This document shows, one piece after another, positions 1,023 through 12,064 of a stretch of 24,470 nucleotides of DNA (position 1 is its first letter; the number at the start of each line of letters is the position of its first letter). The translations under genes were made by a program, and so were the position numbers. Source of the DNA: Piromyces finnis finn (taxonomy: Eukaryota > Fungi > Neocallimastigomycota); contig MCFH01000147.1 of assembly GCA_002104945.1 (NCBI GenBank), forward strand, positions 1-24,470, in the 5' to 3' direction. The notes beneath the pieces were generated by a model. The model ran no database searches. It was not told the DNA's origin and saw nothing but the letters and a program-made list of their open reading frames with translations.

Positions 1023-2109
1023 CTACATGAATACATGAATAAGAAAAAATACAGCAACAAAATGTATTACTCTTCTAATACTACTCTTCTCTTGTAAGAA
1101 TCCAATGTAGTCAACTTTAGCATTTGCATTGTATTTTATATTCATGTAGCTATTGTTGTATTGTTTCTTGTAAGAGACTGATTCACTCTACATCATGTAA
1201 AAATACTATTCACAAGCTTCTGGTGTCGACATTCTTGATTCAAATTTTTTTACCAATTTAAATATTTAATGAAAAGTAAAGTCAAACAAGTTTAGTGTCA
1301 AAAAGCGAATCGAATTTACTAACAACAAACCAAAACTAGAATTTTTAAAGAAAATTTACAACTAGAATTCAAAAAAAAGAAACTTTAAACAAAGCATCGT
1401 AACAATTTTTGTACTATCCAGTACTTTTAAGAAGAGAGAGAGAGACAGATTTTTTTCCATATACGTTATATTTGTAATTTTTATTAGTATTTATTTTATA
1501 TTCAATATTTTTTAATTAGAATTTATTATCATGTCAGTCCTTTATATTAAAGATAAGAATTATATCAGACGTGGTACCCGGTCTTATGGTATCCCCTTAG
1601 ATGATATTCGCTCCTTCTTTATCCGTGGTATTCGATCATGGTCAGTAAATATGCTATGGGAAAAACTCGAGGTTATTCTAGAAGATAAATTTTAATTCAG
1701 TTATTAGTGTTAAATATTTTCAAACTTTCAATGATCACTTTTTCTTAGTCAAGGTTCATGGTTCATCAAAAGATTGTATTAAAATCTTACACATGTTAAA
1801 GAAGAAACTTTCAGTTACCTCAATTTCCTTTTCAGCTCGTAGTAGAAGGAATCACAAATACACTTTTTCCACTCTCAAACGTAAAATTTTAGTTTCTAAT
1901 AAACATCAACATTCTATTCAACAATCATTTCAAACAATCAGTTCAACAATCAGTTCAACATCTCATCAACAATCCGATCTTCAACAAGATCTTTCAAACA
2001 GGATCTTCAACAAGTTTCCCATCATGAAAATATTCCAGATCTACAGCAAACACAATTTCAATCTCAACATTCAACAATTAATTCTAATAGTTCTATCAAC
2101 TCTGATAAC
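1..2109. repeat. Long inverted repeat (palindrome): arms 1-1022 and 1079-2109, 56-bp spacer at 1023-1078
   Basis: The reverse complement of 1-1022 matches 1079-2109 (e.g. ttcttacaagagaagagtagta 1001-1022 vs tactactcttctcttgtaagaa 1079-1100; position 1 pairs with 2109). The differences I found are single-base indels, mostly in homopolymers. The left arm is cut by the window edge. Confidence 0.97.
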
Positions 2110-5100
2110 AGTTCAATAGTTGATAGTTCTTCAGTTTCACAGCCATCTAGTAATAGTTCTACTTATTCCTCTGATGCATCATCCATTAATAACGATGACT
2201 TTAATAATAATAATAATAGCAACGATTCTTCCTCATCCAACAAGCCTGATAACTTTTTCTTTTTGTCTTAGTTGGAACACCAATGGGTGGAATCATGAAA
2301 AGAGAGATAGTATTAGCTATTTCACAGCTATTTTCAAACCATTATTTCTTATGTTTCCAAGAAACTGGTAATGGTTCTGGATCGAATACAGATTATCCTT
2401 GTCGTGTTACTTTGCGAAACTATAGACACTTTTTCAAGAAAGCTGACGAATCAGTTCCGGGAATGAGAGGTTTATATTTAGGTTTTCACAATTCGTGTCA
2501 AGCCTCACTTGAAAACTTCTCTGGAAAGTATATTATTTCTATTTATACTTTTAGTCTCTGGAATAGATTCAAATGCTCGATTGGAAATGTTTATATGCCT
2601 CATAGTCATCACAACATCTATGTTGATCATGCAAAGTTAGAAGTTCGCTTGTGGTTACAAAACTCATTCATCCCATCCATCGATTCTTGTTGGTGATTTT
2701 AATATGTCTAAAGTAAAATTATCCAACTGGTTATCAACTAATGGATTAGGAGATTGGGAAATTCTTCCGCTTAGAGGGTCTACTATCTCTTGGACTCGAG
2801 GTGATCAATCTTCCGACATTGACCATGCTCTTATCAATTCGAAGATGAAAGATCTTATTCACTCAGGATCATTTATAAATAATTTTTATCCTGTATCAGA
2901 CCATAAGCCACTTCTTATTAATGGTAAAATTATTCCTATGGAAGATTTTTCTAATGACTTTAATGTTCCTAAGAAAATTTCTGAAATGGAATAGATTAAA
3001 ATGTATTGAGGAAAAGGAATCTATTATCAGTCATAATAAATTCCAAATTCTTTCAGCAAAATTCAACGATCCTAATGTTTCTACAGATGAACTTTCCCAA
3101 AGAGTTTACTTCAACTGCTTTTTCAATTGCAGACGAGCTCAGTATTACTTCAGCAAATAATGTTATAAAGTCTTCATTTCATATTTCACAACAAATTTTT
3201 AATCTCCAAAAAATCAAAATGAAGTTGTATAAGAGATTTAAAAAAGAAAGAATTTATGATATAGATGAATTTATTAAAAGAATTAAAATCTACCGTAAGC
3301 TCATTGATTACATCCACAAAAGATGTAATGAATTTAGGAAACAAGAATATCTTCATTGGATTAAAAACAGGATGTGAGTATATGAAGAGTCATAATCCTA
3401 AGAAGGCCTGGAAATGGATCAAGAAAACTGCAAAAATTGGAAAAGATTCTTTCTTTATTGCTCAACCAATTAAAAATAAAAATGGAGAATTAGTTGTTGC
3501 TACGGAAGAACAACTAGATGTGTGGCATGATCATTTCGAAAAGCTTGCATCAGATCCAAGTGGTGTAAGTCTTGATTTGGAGCATTGGTATGAAGAACCA
3601 ACGAATAAACGTTTTTCACTCCCTATGCTTGATGAATGGGATATCAACCAAGATATTAGTATTGATGAAGTCAAGTCAGCTATCCTCTCTACTCCGAATT
3701 ATAAAGCATCAGGTCCGGATGGTATTCCAATTGAATTTTACAAAGCATTAATTCCATCAAGTAATGATTCTAATAATGCTACAGATAATAATTCTTCCGG
3801 TAATACCACTTCAGATAATGATGCTTATGGTTTAAATTTTATTCTTAAATTATTCAACCGTACTTGGAATGGAGATTTCCCCAACTCATGGAATGAATCC
3901 AGTATTGTTTCTATTCCTAAGAAGGGAGATTTGACAGATTGTGATAACTATCGAGGTATATCACTTATCAATAATGGTATTAAGTTGATTTCCAAAATTG
4001 TCACCACTAGAATCTCAGAATATGGTCTAAAGAATAATTTCATTAGACCTGAACAATTTGGTTTTCGAAAAAAGGAAGAAAGTATCAGTCTTTTCATTTC
4101 AATCCAAGAAATATGCCGTAGACGTCAATTAGATAATAAAGAGACATATTTGGCCTTTTTAGATCTCAGGAAAGCATACGATTCAGTCCCAATCGGTAAT
4201 ATTCTCCATAAATTAGATTGTTTAGGAATCCGAGGTAAGAGTTTACAATTCATCAAAAATTTATATTTAACATCTAAGGCTAATGTCAAATTAGATGGAC
4301 AATTCTCGAAATCTTTTGATGTGAAGAAAGGAGTCCGTCAAGGATGCCCTCTTTCTCCTATTCTCTTTAATCTCTTTATTAATGATATATTTAAAGAGTG
4401 TGAAGATCTCGGAGTCAGTTTAGGTGACACTCGATGCTGTGGTGGACTTTTTGCAGATGATATAGTTATTTGTGCTCCAACAAGAGGATGCTTAAAAAAG
4501 ATGCTTAGAAGAGTTAATGAATGGGCATTGTATAATGAAATGGAATTTGGTATCCAGAAGTGTTCAACGATGGTGATTCGTCCTGAATCAATAGAAAATC
4601 AGAACAAGAGAGATCCAACATTTTACTTAGCAGGACAACCCATTCCAACTACTGATTGTTATACTTATCTTGGTGTTCCATTTGATAAGAATCTGTCCCT
4701 TAAACCAGTTATTAAAGCTCTTAATAACAAGGTTTTGAAAGGGCTTTTTTCAGTCAGTAAATTCTTAAGAAATCCTAATATTCCTATTCCCTTCAAAAAG
4801 CTAGTACTTAACTCACAAGTGATTAGCAGAGTTTCATACTTTGCACCATTACTTGGATCCAACAAAGCCAGGTCTAGAATTGCACAGAAGCATGTTAACA
4901 AAGGAATACGATGGGTTGCCGGAGTTCATAAAGCTGTATCGTTTATATCTTTATACTCTATCTCAAAAGATTTGAATATTCCTCCATTGTCAGCCAAATG
5001 TGCATTAGCTCAGGTTAGATGTTTTAACAAATGGAAAAACTCAAATTGTATTATCTCACACCTTGTCAATTACATTCCTAAATTTAGAAAATACACGTGG

Positions 5101-6075
5101 TGCAAATCAAGTAGGACACTTGATAAAAAACTAAAGAAGCATGGAGATGTTAAAGCAATTAAAAACTTTTATTGGAAAGATCTCAAAGGGAATTCAATCA
5201 AAGCGCAATATTATGATGATAATAAATTTATTGAAACTAAAGATTTTATTAAATTATGTTATGAGTACCCAGAGTTTGCCTATGGCTTCTACTGGCTATT
5301 GAAAGCAAGAAGCGGATACAAGTTGGATGCTAGAGTTGCCAAAGCTGCTAAATTTGTTGATCCAGTTTGTCCTAACTACTGTCCATGTTGCAAGTGTGGA
5401 GATCAAAGTATTAAACATTGGTTATTAGATTGTCCAACATTTAGAGATATCCGTATTAAACATTATGATTCTATAGTCCAGCTATTAAATTTTTTCAGTC
5501 AACGTAATTCCAATAGTCCTATCAATAATAATGAAATTGATAATATCAGTAGAGATAGTAATAACATTAATAGTAATAGTAACAATAGTAATAATAACAA
5601 TAGTAATAGTAACAATAGTAATAGTAACAATAGTAATAATAACAATAATAGAAATAATAATATTAGTAATGATAGCAATAGTGAAGATAATAATTCTAAT
5701 TTAGATAGTAATTTAGTTAATGATAGTAATAGTTCTAATAATCCGGTGAATATTAATGTGTATGATTATTCTAGTGTGTGCAGTGAAATATTTAAATTCC
5801 TTCTTGGGGGAAAAAGTTTTAACAATATTAATTACAATTCCAGGGAATGGAAAGAACTTTGTAAGCGTCAGATTCAATCTGGTACTAACGAAGGAACACC
5901 ATTCTTGACGGTAACCGCGGAACTTCTAACCAAAATCATGCCTTTTGCTATTGGCCAGCAATGGTCAATGTTCAAAAGGTTTGAAGCAACATCCAAGAGC
6001 GTCAATGCTGAAGAAACAGTAAGACAGGCCAGGAGGGCCAGCGCAACCAATGGAGATCATAATTTTGTTCCATGA
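1531..6075 (+). CDS. LINE-A polyprotein (~1,500 aa reconstructed): RRM-like N-terminus, low-complexity linker, APE endonuclease, reverse transcriptase, CCHC knuckle. Frameshifted in this sequence 5' of ~3370.
   Basis: Joining the ORF pieces across about eleven single-base indels gives one frame. APE motifs: SWNTNGW (~2270), FQETG, GNVYMP, LVGDFN, DIDH, SDH (2896-2904). RT motifs in the clean 3366-6075 part: KASGPDGIP, YRGISL, EQFGFR, FLDLRKAYDSV, GVRQGCPLSPILF, FADD (4450-4461), YLGV. CX2CX8HX4C at 5380-5433. No RNase H seen. Confidence 0.9.
1905..2250 (+). repeat. Coding tandem repeats (caacaatcagtt)n and (caacaagatctt)n plus an S/N-rich tract in the LINE-A linker
   Basis: The 12- and 9-nt units are visible in both palindrome arms. 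The consensus frame reads approximately QQSVQQSVQQSHQQSDLQQDLQQ, then NSNSSINSDNSS...NNNNNSNDSSS. Confidence 0.75.
5510..5760 (+). repeat. In-frame Asn/Ser-rich microsatellite-like tract (aat/agt/aac) in the LINE-A C-terminal region
   Basis: Translates to NSNSNNSNNNNSNSNNSN... inside ORF 3265..6075 with the frame preserved. Confidence 0.85.
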
Positions 6076-6285
6076 TAAAATTTCGATCTTTGGCTCGGTG
6101 TCCCATTGGAAGTCAAATACAATTATTATACTTTAGTATGATAGTGGCTTTCTTACTTTAATTAAAATTACTAGAATACATTATACCCAATTTTTATTCA
6201 TTTGTGTTTATTTAAACATATTTTTTTTATTTTTATTTTATTTTAATTTTTATATTTCATGTATTATAATTTTAATTAAATTAAT

Positions 6286-6310
6286 AATAAAGTTTAAAAT
6301 ATTTGATGCC

Positions 6311-6360
<50 letters not shown>
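6286..6360 (+). terminator. LINE-A polyadenylation signal and poly(A) tail
   Basis: AATAAA at 6286-6291 lies 22 nt upstream of (A)47. The same terminal motif taataaagttta..tatttgatgc(c/t)gtt(A)n recurs at ~10179-10219 and ~10893-10943. Confidence 0.85.
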
Positions 6361-6362
<2 letters not shown>

Positions 6363-6597
6363 ACTCATGCTCATGGTACTGAGAGAGTAGAAAGAATTAA
6401 ATCCAAGTATTGCGCAATGGATGCTTCCCTCTTGGGTACGTGCCTTCATTTATTTAATAAATGTAGTTTCTCAAGGGGGTCTACTCATGCTCATGGTACT
6501 GAGAGAGTAGGAAGAATTAAATCCAAGTATTGCGCAATGGATACTTGGTTAGTCTTTATTTGGAAATATTATTAGGACTAAGCTCATGGTACTGAGC
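6361..6597. repeat. Direct repeat (62-bp unit, 120-bp period) plus a third partial copy; hairpin-rich
   Basis: 6361-6422 vs 6481-6542 are 61/62 identical. The core gctcatggtactgag appears again at 6582-6596. Confidence 0.92.
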
Positions 6598-7837
6598 GAA
6601 CAGAGTTGATAATTTGAGTGTTAGTTGTTATATCATATATCCCTTACACCTTCAACTTATTTTTTAGATAGTAGTTGCTTTAACAACTTTTATAACATAT
6701 TATTTTAAACTTAAAATTGTTTGATTCGGTAGTATTAAATACTGATTTTGAATATTTCTTGATTTCATTTTTATTTTAGCTTTCATCGATAATTTGTTAT
6801 CCCAGTTTACTACTTATTCTCTTTGTTCTTTTATTCCTTTTTTATTCTTTATATGTTGATTAGTCAGATAGTTTTGTTTTTTCAGTTAGTTTGTTATTCC
6901 TTTCATTTATTCTTGAGTTTCGTGTGGGGTGCGGCTTTCATTACTATAATCATATTTAATCTTTTATTTTTTTTTCTATTTTTATTATTTTCGAGGGGCG
7001 CGGCTTTTTTATTTTTCCTTTATGATTTTATATGATTCTAGTAATATCTTTTTTTATTTCTTATTTTTTTTGTAACTCTAGATTTTCCAAGGAATCTCTT
7101 TTCTACTAACATTCTTTTGTATACTTTTTCTATCTCTTTTCTATATATATATATATTTCTTATACCTTATATTATATGTATATTTATATATCTGTATAAC
7201 TTAATTAGGTTTATTATGGACTATTATGGTAAGTATTAACACCTTTTTTTTCTTTAACATTTTTATTATCAAAGCTTCTATCCTGGAAAATCGAGTATTC
7301 TATTTTTATATTGTAAATACTACTCTTGTTTCAATTTTATCTTTTAAAAAAAAAAAAAAATTTATTATGTTTACCCAAAATTCTTCAACTTTTTTTCCAT
7401 TATTTTTGATATAACAACTTTTCACTCTTATTATCTCTCTACCTTACAACATAAACAACCCAAATGAATGTTCAATTTCAACAATCAGAATCAACACAAT
7501 ACAATAATCATCCAATAAATTATACAATTCTTATAAATATAAAGAGCTTTCAAAATACAGTTATAATACAGAAATCCAAAGTGATAGATATTCAAAATTT
7601 ATCTTCCCGTTTAAAGTCTTCAGTAGAGTTGGAACTAAGTTTGTCAACAACTTAGCCACTTTTCCAGTTATAAAATTTAAAATATTGTTTGACAAATAAT
7701 CCACTAGCTATATAATATATCCGTCTTTATTATTATTATTTTTATTTTACTATTTATTTTATTTCATTATCTTATTTATATTATTATATCAATACTTCAA
7801 ATTATTAATATCTATTGTCATAATAAGTTCTTTCAAA

Positions 7838-10024
7838 ATGAACAATACCAATTGTACTGTACCTACCTTACGACGTGGTCTTCGTTTCTTCGGATCTAAC
7901 TCCAATAAATCATATCTAATTTTTATCCATGATCTTAGTTCATGGTCCAAACAACGACTAATGGAATTTCTTTTAAAGACATTCAACCCTTCAATGATAT
8001 TCTTCAATCCCTCACCAAAAAATATTCACAATCACTCGGTACCTATTTCATTCTAAAAGTCAATGGAAAATGCCCGCTTAAAGCCATGTTACTTATACAC
8101 TCACTTTCTAAAAAAACTCCCAATCTCTAGTAAAATATCTTGGAAATTCATTGATAAGCTCAAAAACAATAGATCATACAAAAGCAAACGATCTATCAAA
8201 TCCACTACTGGTCCACTCTCTGACGATTTCTATTTTAGTCATCTAAGCTCTAATGCTTCCTTTTTCAACTTATGTACTTGTTGGAACATCAATGGTTGGA
8301 ACCCGGAGAAAAAGGACGGTGTTTTATACTTCGTCTCTGTTTTCAAACCTGTATGTGTCTGTCTTCAAGAAGTAGGTAACAGCCAATTCCTCTCTGGTAA
8401 TGCAATTTCCTCCCCATGCCTACCGAACTATAAACCAGTACACAGACGTGCTAATCCTAAAGTTCCAGGTATGAGAGGACTTTACATTGGTGTTCATAAC
8501 TCTTGTTCCTTTACTCCTGAACCTCTTCTATATAAGTACATCATTTCAGTTACAATACTGTCATTTTGGAACCAGAGATGTACCATCGGTAATATTTACT
8601 TCCCGCAAACTAGATGGCCGGATGCTAGATTAATTGCCTTTGATGAACTTGATAAGTGGTTAACAACGCATAACAAATTCAACCACCCAGCTATCCTTGT
8701 AGGAGACTTTAATATGTCAGCTATTAAAATCAAATCTTATATATCACAACACTTCCCGGATTGGACTATGGCTGAGTTAACTGGTAATAATTTTACCTGG
8801 GAAAAAGGATCTAAATCTTCATGCATTGATCATATTATATACAACAAAGCTATGACAGAACACATAAACAAATCTTCAGTATGCGAAGTTTTTCACAATG
8901 TTTCTGATCACAAACCGATCCTTGTGTCTTGTAAAAAAGACTCTTCTGATGGTTTCAAAAAGCCTAAGAAGACCTTTAAGTGGTCAAGTCATATCTGTAA
9001 CACAAAGTGTTCTGACATTCTTACTAGTAATCGCTTTGCTGTTCTAGCTTCCGAGCTTGAAGCTAATTGCGATAGCCTTTCGGCTGACGATATGGTTTCA
9101 AAATTTTTAGATACTTCCAAAACTATAAGTAAAGAAATAAAAGCCATTGTGCCTGCAGATTTAAAAGGTCCAGCATTCCATTGCCCTCAATACATCAAAA
9201 ACTTATCACATGAAAAACACCTGGCTTACAAAAATATTAAGCCCCTTTCAGATTGCGCTGACATGGAAAATTATCTTAACCAGTTCTCCATATACCAAAA
9301 TCTATGTAATACCATCAAAAAGGGTTAAGAGTAAATTCAGATCCAATCTCTATAAAGCTAATATTGTTTAGTTTCTATCGGTAAACATTTTATTGATAAA
9401 AGCTTTAGACAAGGTTGGAAAGGCCTTAAAAAACTTGCCAAACCAAGTTATTCGTCCTCCCATGTTTCAACTATTAAGGACAAGAATGGCAAGGATTTAT
9501 TTACTCCTCAAGAACAATTAAAACGTTGGGCTGAACATTATGAAAATCTTGCATCTGATGTTACAAATCACAGCTTAAATCGTGGTTACTGGGAAAGAGC
9601 CTTCCAATTCAACCATATCAATCAAATAGCATGGGATATAAATGGTCCCATTTCTATTGAGGAAATTAGAAATGTTGTTCTGTCAATGAAGAATAACAAG
9701 GCTCCAGGTCCCGATGGTATCCCAATTGAATTTTTCAAAGCTTTCTTTTGTAACGAAGAACTGGAGAAAGAACATAAGTCTGCTGGAAATTGTCTTAAAT
9801 TAATTTTTAATAAAATCTGGAATGGTTCCTTTCCTTTGAAATGGAACTCTGCTTCCATTGTTTCTATTCCAAAGAAAGGCGATCTTTCAGACTGTAATAA
9901 TTATCGTGGTATTTCTCTCATCAATGTAGGTCTTAAAATTATTTCAAAAATTGTAACTAATAGAATTTCAAAGTATGCTCTTTCTCATAATTTTATAAGA
10001 CCTGAGCAATTTGGTTTTCGCAAT
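7838..10024 (+). pseudogene. LINE-B polyprotein, 5' part (RRM-like domain, APE, linker, first third of RT)
   Basis: Four frame changes (~7972, ~8110, ~9320, ~9368) join MNNT..WSKQRLMEF / KYSQSLGTYFILKVNG / WNINGW, LQEVG, GNIYFP, LVGDFN, CIDH, SDH / KDKNG..EQLKRWAEHYENLASD / KAPGPDGIP, YRGISL, EQFGFRN. It is truncated before the catalytic RT motif. Confidence 0.9.
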
Positions 10025-10027
10025 TAA

Positions 10028-10219
10028 TTCAACAATCTCATCAACATTTAGATCAAATACAGAGTATCCTTGTCGTGTTACCTTACGAAACTATAGACAT
10101 AAAAATTTACAATTCATCAAAAATTTGTATTTAACATAAGGCTAATGTCAAATTAGATGGACAATTCTCGAAATCTTTTAATAAAGTTTAAAAATATTTG
10201 ATGCTGTTAAAAAAAAAAA
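10028..10219 (+). mobile_element. ~190-bp mosaic retro-copy built from four collinear LINE-A-family fragments plus poly(A)
   Basis: 10028-10046 = LINE-A ~1954-1971 (19/19 to the reverse complement of 136-154). 10051-10099 = 2380-2428 (45/49). 10100-10179 = 4236-4317 (3 substitutions, one 2-bp deletion). 10179-10208 = 6285-6313. Then (A)11. Confidence 0.9.
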
Positions 10220-10220
10220 T

Positions 10221-10382
10221 ACTTCATATGTAGAGGATCTCGCGGCTTTTCTTACTAAAACAATCCCTATCATTAGTAGCTCAATGGAGCTTCTTTTTAA
10301 TAGATTTAGTAAGATATCTAGTGTAATAAAGAGCGCCGACGTCCTATCGATATGGCAAAGGAACATTCTTAATATTCAATAG
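10221..10382 (+). pseudogene. C-terminal 53 codons of the LINE-B polyprotein
   Basis: TSYVEDLAAFLTKTIPIISSSMELLFNRF aligns without gaps to the LINE-A C-terminus TPFLTVTAELLTKIMPFAIGQQWSMFKRF (from 5896). Ends in TAG at 10380-10382. Not in the ORF track because it has no start codon. Confidence 0.75.
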
Positions 10383-10728
10383 ACAGGGTTCAATGCTAGT
10401 ATTTCTTCGAATGAAAACATTTTGAGCTCATGGGAGAGCTTAGTGAACACCACACTATCATACCTGATATTACTTCCCTTTTTTATTTCATTAGGTAGGG
10501 ACCAATCCTACACAGTACGAATTGCAGAGTTCATTGAACTTTTATGTAACTTTAATAATTATTTTATTTTATTTTATATTTATATTTATACATATATTAT
10601 TATTATATTATTATATCAATATGTATTATTATCTAATATAATCACAAATTAAATAAATAAATACAAGAAGTATATTCTCTTCCTAATCTAAAAAAAATAC
10701 TAAAGAAACAGTATGATAAGTTGGTAGA

Positions 10729-10943
10729 ATTATACTTTCGTATAATAGTGGCTTTCTCACTTTAACTAAAGTTACTACAATATTCAATTTTTATTCATTT
10801 GTGTTTATTTAAACTTTTTTTTTTTTAATTTTTATTTTTTTTATTTTTATTTTTATTTTTTATAGCATGTATTATAATTTTAATTAAATTAATAATAAAG
10901 TTTAGTAATATTTGATGCTGTTAAAAAAAAAAAAAAAAAAAAA
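10729..10943 (+). mobile_element. 5'-truncated LINE-A-family copy (3' UTR only plus poly(A))
   Basis: Aligns to LINE-A 6125-6313 (attatacttt.gtat.atagtggctttct.acttta...tttattcatttgtgtttatttaaac...catgtattataattttaattaaattaataataaagttta). AATAAA at 10894-10899, (A)21 at 10923-10943. Confidence 0.92.
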
Positions 10944-12064
10944 GGTAAGTAGAATCAAAGTAGCCAATGTAATTATAACTTTGTTCCATAATAAAAACTG
11001 GATTTTATTTAAAGTCATAAACAATCACTACAGCTAATATTGTACTCAAGTATAATGACTTTTTTATATAAATTACTAAAATAATTAAATCAAATTTTTA
11101 TTTATTTATATTTAATGGTGTGTCTTAATTACAAATTTAATATAATAAGTAATCTATAATTTTTATTGCAAATAAAACTATTTATTTTCACTATTTTGCC
11201 TAGGAATTGAAGGATTACAAATATTATTTATAAAGATTTTATTACAAATATTAAATTTATATATTATTTTTAAATTTATCAAATAAAAAAAGTATTCGTT
11301 TTAATATTTTTTAAAATATTATAAACATTAATATTATTATATATATTTTAAAAAATCAATTTAAAGTTTTGCCTTTGTAAATTAAATATTAAGAAAAAAA
11401 AAAAAAAAAATTAATTATCTTATTTCATAACCCTTAGTATAAGAAGGTTAGAATAATATAATATTTTTTCAATTGTTAAATTTATGGAATTATTTAAGTT
11501 TACATTTTTTTATCCAACAAAAACATTGATTATATATTAATGCATGTGATCTATTTGAAATTTTGATCTTGAATTATCCACTTTTTTATTGTCCAACAAA
11601 AATTAATATGCCATGTGTATTAATTTGTATTTATTATAAATAATAATATTTAAGGAAAAATAAAACAAAAAATTGAAACATTTAATATAATATCGAGTTT
11701 TATTTTTTTTTAAAAAATACCATTTTAATAAAAATAATTATAGCATTTATAATTTTGAGTTTAATAGAAAAGTAATCCTTGCTATTTTAGTTTTATATAT
11801 TTTGTAATTATTATGGAAATATGATAGTTTTTTTTTATTAATAAAATTATAGTTTTAATATTATTATACCCAAATCATACATATTTAAATTTTCTATTTG
11901 TTTTTAACATCATTGCTTAAATTAAAATTTAGAAATCTGGGCATAGTTATTTTTATTAGCATTTTTATGTCATTAATAATAAAGATAGTGACAATAAAAA
12001 GAGAAATTAATATTATTTTAATACCACATTAAAAATAGTATATTGGAAATTTATAAAATTGTCA

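Follow-up and report, generated by a model that had tools for sequence, protein, structure and literature searches.

A collinear four-piece LINE-A retrocopy in the fungus Piromyces finnis as a probable product of serial template switching

Shortened or composite retrocopies of long interspersed nuclear elements (LINEs) are known from several systems: the spliced integrated retrotransposed elements (SpIREs) of human L1 carry deletions bounded by GT-AG splice sites, and Gilbert et al. in 2005 reportedly obtained internally deleted and chimeric L1 insertions in cultured-cell retrotransposition assays. In Magnaporthe, the LINE MGL makes single and double template jumps, among them a tripartite chimera with a 14-bp target-site duplication (TSD) and no microhomology (PMC2104539). 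R2 template jumps have likewise been described in vivo, in a study that also refers to L1 insertions with internal deletions from cultured cells, and the LINEs R2 and R1 of Drosophila have non-autonomous derivatives known as short internally deleted elements (SIDEs) (PMC3414825). Here, we analyze contig MCFH01000147.1 of Piromyces finnis (assembly GCA_002104945.1), whose entire 24,470 nucleotides constitute the window (contig C54), and which carries a copy of the LINE-A family reduced to a mosaic of four short pieces. This mosaic is a dead, one-off LINE-A retrocopy with no likely function, and it probably arose by serial template switching of an L1-like reverse transcriptase (RT) during target-primed reverse transcription (TPRT), a reading to which we assign a probability of roughly 0.6. 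The mechanism is already known, and the mosaic is a tidy example of it rather than a new mobile mini-element.

Element coordinates throughout are those of the LINE-A copy on contig C212 (C212 168113 onward), which spans 5666 nt plus poly(A). Local BLAST of positions 9990-10260 against the rest of the window aligned 10051-10099 with 2380-2428 (92%), 10100-10182 with 4236-4320 (93%), and 10179-10219 with 6285-6324 (95%). Together with comparison across copies, this resolved window 10023-10219 into four same-sense, collinear LINE-A pieces (1314-1332, 1737-1785, 3595-3670, and 5638-5666 + A11), ending in the exact 3' terminus of the family followed by the A11 tail (Table 1). The intervening skips measure 404, 1809, and 1967 nt. 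A sequence-only reading of the window had already recognized these pieces and estimated the skips at ~0.4, 1.8, and 2.0 kb, and both points stand; its figure of 5.3 kb for the parent LINE was too low, the actual length being 5.67 kb, with the first ~435 nt lacking from C54. The same reading placed the start of the element at 10021, and here it was misled, as the first piece is split and its other half lies outside C54. The 19-nt core of that piece (10028-10046), at which C54 carries a 1-nt assembly indel, is found exactly (19/19) in three other LINE-A copies, including the C212 version, with an E-value of 3.5e-6 against the 5.7-kb element. Upstream, C212 168087-168111 (segment 1a) matches LINE-A 1272-1296 at 25/25 (E = 8.5e-10). 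Because this 25-mer runs on into 10023-10046 (segment 1b) in the L063/L065 type of LINE-A, where the two segments are contiguous, the 19-nt piece is the tail of a longer one; piece 1 comprises at least ~57 nt and is interrupted by a younger nested block of 9.4 kb. The mosaic begins at LINE-A position 1272 and lacks the ~122-bp 5' monomers.

Segment 3 matches LINE-A at 73 of 76 positions, with one substitution and a 2-nt deletion, and segment 4 is identical to the C164 copy (30/30) and nearly so to the main LINE-A (25/26). Away from the junctions, the pieces differ by ~1% from the sampled LINE-A copies, and mismatches and fillers cluster at the junctions themselves. Overlaps at the three junctions (J1-J3) amount to 0-4 nt: a single T at J3, 0-1 nt at J2, and, at J1, either a TTTA filler or a GATC overlap. 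The skipped stretches start and end with AT..TG, CT..AG (or CT..GG), and GA..AA; a search for GT...AG splice boundaries at all three gaps against the parent LINE-A returned none, in line with the earlier view that the skips are not spliceosomal.

Table 1. Features of the mosaic and of the insertions around it (window positions unless a contig is named)
Feature	Position	Strand	Description
Full-length LINE-A with A48	1076..6360	+	Reference copy of the sequence-only reading; 5' part of the nested block; first ~435 nt missing from C54
LINE-B, 3'-truncated, no poly(A)	6361..10022	+	Mid-5'-monomer to element position ~3595 of 5.8 kb
TSD, upstream copy, TAAAGAAAAAGTAT	C212 168073-168086		Directly 5' of segment 1a
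Mosaic segment 1a (upstream half) with upstream TSD copy	C212 168073-168111 = L032 614-652		Outside C54
Mosaic segment 1b (downstream half of piece 1)	10023..10046	+	LINE-A about 1309-1332; 19/19 core 10028-10046
J1	10047..10050	+	TTTA: filler or mismatched ATCC; next GATC present at donor and acceptor
Mosaic segment 2	10051..10099	+	LINE-A 1737-1785 (window 2380-2428); 45/49 to main LINE-A, 44/44 to C13 copy
J2	10100..10105	+	TAAAAA versus TAAGAG just 5' of segment 3 (4/6); filler or error-rich edge
Mosaic segment 3	10106..10179	+	LINE-A 3595-3670 (window 4242-4320), within the RT coding region
Mosaic segment 4	10179..10208	+	Last 29-30 nt, LINE-A 3' untranslated region (5638-5666); 1-nt (T) overlap with segment 3
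Mosaic A11 tail and TAC	10209..10222	+	Doubles as upstream TSD copy of the later LINE-B-like insertion
Later nested insertion: 5'-truncated LINE-B-like 3' end (LINE-B 5251-5760) with A8TAC	10223..10700	+	Complete 3' terminus
TSD, downstream copy, TAAAGAAACAGTAT	10701..10714	+	Beyond the nested LINE-B-like fragment
Oldest insertion: LINE-A-like 3' end (86%) with A21	10731..10944	+	Flanked by GATAAGTTGGTAGAAT / GGTAAGTAGAAT

The entire mosaic is bracketed by a 14-bp TSD, TAAAGAAA[A/C]AGTAT, whose two copies agree at 13 of 14 positions. Searched over both strands of the 24.5 kb with at most one mismatch allowed, the 14-mer has only two matches, against an expectation of 0.32. Its length is of the order seen in this genome's own LINEs, clean LINE-A and LINE-B insertions having TSDs of 12-13 bp, and the LINE 3' terminus and A-tail that characterize a TPRT retrocopy are both present (10179-10208 + A11). 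Since terminus, tail, and TSD occur together, the mosaic entered as one unit through the LINE machinery, in one genuine retrotransposition event of ~225 bp.

The assembly was produced with PacBio/Falcon and comprises 56.46 Mb (56,455,805 bases) in 232 contigs, the largest scaffolds being 2.63 and 1.96 Mb (PMC5622200); G+C content of the sequence ranges from 11 to 36%. Genome-wide, the 199-bp mosaic stretch has three full-length matches at 100%, on C54, C212, and C189. C54 1076-24470 aligns with C212 168550-191874, reaching the ends of both contigs, and C54 9245-24470 aligns with the end of C189 (C189 1298977-1314210). Across as much as 23 kb, the flanks show 99.1-99.4% identity, with 170 indel events and 14 apparent substitutions (mostly adjacent swaps) between them, which is PacBio consensus noise. 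As the flanks are shared and differ almost only by indels, the three matches represent one locus assembled three times, and C54 is a redundant re-assembly of the overlapping C212 and C189 ends. C54 1-1079 is an inverted copy of the contig's own 1076-2150 and has no counterpart in C212, which identifies it as a fold-back artefact and accounts for the absence of the first ~435 nt of LINE-A from C54. The sequence-only reading had proposed a genome search for several loci with the same junctions; the search yielded this single locus, and the idea that the three matches form a mini-family was dropped. Junction 70-mers, one for each of the three junctions, occur nowhere else in the 56-Mb assembly, and no second locus with any junction was found down to roughly 80% identity; an apparent contiguous match of 82% across J1, on three contigs, proved to be a spurious extension. 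Two junction 34-mers likewise had no match in a metagenome collection. Redundant contigs can thus mimic a family of three identical copies, and where this assembly shows identical "copies" on small contigs, they are not to be taken as independent loci.

Compared with the systems described above, the mosaic resembles SpIREs as a LINE retrocopy without internal stretches and differs from them in that none of its three gaps is of the GT-AG kind. It also resembles the cultured-cell L1 insertions, which are one-off dead copies with internal deletions attributed to reverse transcription or integration, and the RT here is L1-like as well; three skips that keep only ~4% of the template would, however, be extreme among them. 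With the MGL/WEIRD/Mg-SINE chimeras (PMC2104539) and the mammalian U6/L1 chimeras, it shares several RNA-derived pieces joined head to tail in one orientation, a 3'-most piece formed by a LINE 3' end with poly(A), a single TSD around the whole, and the lack of extended microhomology at junctions. In contrast to both, its pieces all derive from one LINE family and are collinear, giving it the look of a multiply deleted element, and it would require three switches where those chimeras show one or two; the GCC*A/U switch motif of MGL is absent from its donor sites (PMC2104539). Like the SIDEs of Drosophila R2/R1, it is a LINE cut down to short parts with the 3' end kept, whereas SIDEs form multi-copy families, keep a working 5' end in the shape of a ribozyme, and move by mobilisation in trans (PMC3414825), and the mosaic is a single copy without the 5' end and with no sign of mobilisation.

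LINE-A carries an RVT_1 domain, the nearest solved relative is human L1 ORF2p (E = 2.5e-33), and the RT is L1-like. Under serial template switching, synthesis would have started on a LINE-A RNA at its poly(A) end, with the primer supplied by a nick in A/T-rich target DNA ~35 bp downstream of a tRNA-Ser gene. After ~29 nt, the enzyme would have left its template and resumed ~2.0 kb further 5', copied the next ~76-82 nt, hopped ~1.8 kb, copied 49 nt, and hopped another ~0.4 kb. A final ~60-70 nt would then have been copied before the cDNA was joined to the upstream target end, producing a ~225-bp mosaic with a 14-bp TSD. At later times, a LINE-B-like 3' fragment inserted into the A-tail and the 9.4-kb block into the first piece. 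Hops within one RNA and hops between LINE-A RNAs would fit the sequence equally well. An intermolecular origin was considered from the best matches of individual segments (to the main, C13, and C164 types of LINE-A) and set aside, as shared ancestral states explain that pattern.

The four pieces and the order in which they lie, the TSD, the nesting, and the single locus are observed directly; the origin of the skips in reverse transcription, as opposed to a later loss, is our inference. Of the 4.4-kb interior, 4.18 kb (95%) is missing, yet the two termini and the two TSD copies are undamaged and islands of 49 and 76 nt survive; a hopping polymerase would leave intact ends with small islands automatically, which independent deletions of kb-sized stretches of DNA would be unlikely to do. 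The arrangement of discontinuous same-sense pieces within one TSD and without splice signals, by which template switching is recognized, is found here, with four pieces joined at three junctions. Other copies also carry internal skips, with overlaps of 1-2 nt (three skips in L048, and further cases in L012, L042/43, and L051/52), and the full-length LINE-A that adjoins a poly(A)-less LINE-B without a TSD of its own suggests another jump chimera, which would support switching. Those same internally deleted copies would also fit an account that we consider unlikely, in which an ordinary 5'-truncated LINE-A of ~4.4 kb (1272 to the tail) integrated here and later underwent three DNA-level deletions by end joining or replication slippage. 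The three-skip L048 is an old copy (87-92%), as it should be if deletions build up with age, and overlaps of 0-4 nt with small fillers also fit end joining; yet three kb-scale losses would have to spare the termini, the tail, and both TSD copies while leaving the two islands, and the retained pieces show only ~1% private change, which leaves little time for three independent events. Shortening of the RNA before reverse transcription, whether by non-canonical processing, by RNA recombination, or through a lost or unassembled deleted master, strikes us as quite improbable, and it includes the non-autonomous derivative, akin to a short interspersed nuclear element (SINE), that the sequence-only reading had offered together with the idea that the retained segments mark cis-acting elements. 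The 3'-terminal 29 nt and poly(A) that were kept are the part a LINE RT would need, and SIDEs provide a precedent (PMC3414825). Against this, the three full matches are one locus, no junction recurs in the assembly down to ~80% identity, the metagenome collection contains neither of two junction 34-mers, the 5' monomer/promoter region is missing, and no gap is GT-AG; neither the SINE-like derivative nor the cis-acting elements find support.

An artefact of the PacBio assembly or its consensus we regard as highly improbable. In its favour, C54 is itself redundant and partly artefactual (the fold-back at 1-1079), and the assembly contains many indel errors, but the 199 bp are identical in three separately assembled contigs, and a chimeric read would not yield collinear pieces of 19-80 nt within a TSD and a poly(A) tail. 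Several points nevertheless count against serial template switching. The structure was read from the assembled contigs C54, C212, and C189 and not from raw reads, and sequence alone does not formally separate skips made during reverse transcription from a 4.4-kb 5'-truncated copy that lost three stretches later. By our own calculation, random acceptor sites would give a collinear order by chance in ~20% of cases, which makes collinearity weak evidence. A TAC lies between the A11 tail and the TSD of the mosaic, leaving three nucleotides unexplained; TAC follows both A-runs (10220-10222 and 10698-10700), and one of these copies is accounted for as the TSD of the LINE-B-like insertion, whereas the original could consist of bases added without a template or reflect a template RNA that reached 3 nt further at its 3' end. 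When the 5.7-kb RNA was folded to its minimum free energy (MFE), the graph distance between donor and acceptor was no shorter than for randomly chosen pairs with the same spacing (fractions 0.71, 0.095, and 0.72), a weak test, given that the MFE structure of a 5.7-kb AT-rich RNA is unreliable, and the ends of the skipped parts were not unusually complementary (duplex-energy fractions 0.21, 0.15, and 0.81). Folding and complementarity thus provide no structural rationale for the jump sites. Of the proposal of repeated jumping along one folded RNA, the jumping is the best-supported reading, in view of the TSD, termini, and junctions, while the folded RNA gained nothing from the fold and duplex comparisons.

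The value of the locus lies in a clean, TSD-bounded case of, most probably, three successive hops on the RNA of the element's own family within one integration, in an early-diverging fungus whose LINEs had not been studied before. Together with the further copies that show skips or chimerism, it suggests that a survey of LINE copies across this assembly could measure how frequently, and at which sites, such hops occur. Two nested jump products at this locus and skips in several other copies raise the possibility that the LINE-A and LINE-B RTs of P. finnis are unusually switch-prone, with preferred landing regions such as the TTCAACAA-repeat region around LINE-A 1270-1390. We consider this idea speculative and doubtful; were it true, the genome would be a natural archive for the rules of LINE template switching. 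In a weaker version, the retained pieces may correspond to stretches of RNA that the ribonucleoprotein shielded or bound.

Two of the other skipped copies were characterized further. L048 284-1978 (C200 987365-989059) is LINE-B-like at 87-92% and carries collinear skips of 1159, 191, and 888 nt with overlaps of 2, 1, and ~5 nt, making it a larger-scale sister of the mosaic; a TSD around this multi-deleted copy was looked for and not found. L051 and L052 (C118 5442-8965 and C90 151128-154651) are young copies of LINE-B (99%) and share the same internal deletion of 409 nt (LINE-B 1786-2193, with a GG overlap); they represent either a propagating deletion variant or redundant contigs.

The 9.4-kb block nested in the first piece (C212 168112 to window 10022) consists of extra C residues, the full-length LINE-A, its A48 tail, and LINE-B from mid-monomer to ~3595. 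Its LINE-A is not flanked by a separate TSD and is followed immediately by the poly(A)-less LINE-B (6361-10022), which is 97.6-98.1% identical to full-length copies and, over 9500-10023, 100% identical to many copies; this LINE-B in turn meets segment 1b, with which it shares 2-4 nt (CAAT), its end falling at 10022/10024. A possible 12-bp TSD of the block, ATCATTTCAACA / ATTAATTCAACA, matches at 10 of 12 positions. Judging from this arrangement, the block is probably a second template-jump chimera, which would have formed by internal priming on LINE-B RNA followed by an end-to-end jump onto LINE-A poly(A). A single chimeric cDNA of the mosaic and the 3'-truncated LINE-B was also considered and rejected in favour of nesting, because the upstream 25/25 match continues piece 1 and the TSD brackets the mosaic.

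On the downstream side, the LINE-B-like fragment (10223-10689) is 82-86% identical to about 40 LINE-B copies and is flanked by A11TAC (10209-10222) and A8TAC (10690-10700), identically in all three assemblies. These flanks are the fragment's own duplication, and with A(8-11)TAC on both sides, a chimera of the mosaic with this fragment is less likely than nesting. The order of events at the locus runs from the LINE-A-like 3' end to the mosaic with its 14-bp TSD, followed by the LINE-B-like end and the 9.4-kb block, either of which may have come first.

A tRNA-Ser(CGA) gene (L032 497-578; C212 167956-168037) lies 35 bp upstream of the 14-mer. In this neighbourhood, which on the downstream side takes in window 10701-10960, a ~30-bp stretch was hit at least twice by independent LINE insertions of the same sense, and another two occurred later inside the mosaic. 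Across the LINE-bearing loci examined, a tRNA gene lies nearby at only 2 of 22, which does not show general tRNA targeting, and kinship with the tRNA-targeted TRE-type elements of Dictyostelium, first considered in view of the AT-rich, AAT-repeat sequence, was rejected on the same count and because the assembly is that of P. finnis.

The bodies of LINE-A and LINE-B are only ~58% identical, and their 3' ends are different. The two families share a ~122-bp 5' monomer at 94-98% identity, in 1-2.5 tandem copies with variable start points, as recorded at window 6361-6546, C212 168113-168410 (L032 654-951), L062 3071-3242, and L065 1916-2200. By analogy with the monomers of mouse L1, this suggests that the 5' monomer is a promoter module exchanged between LINE-A and LINE-B.

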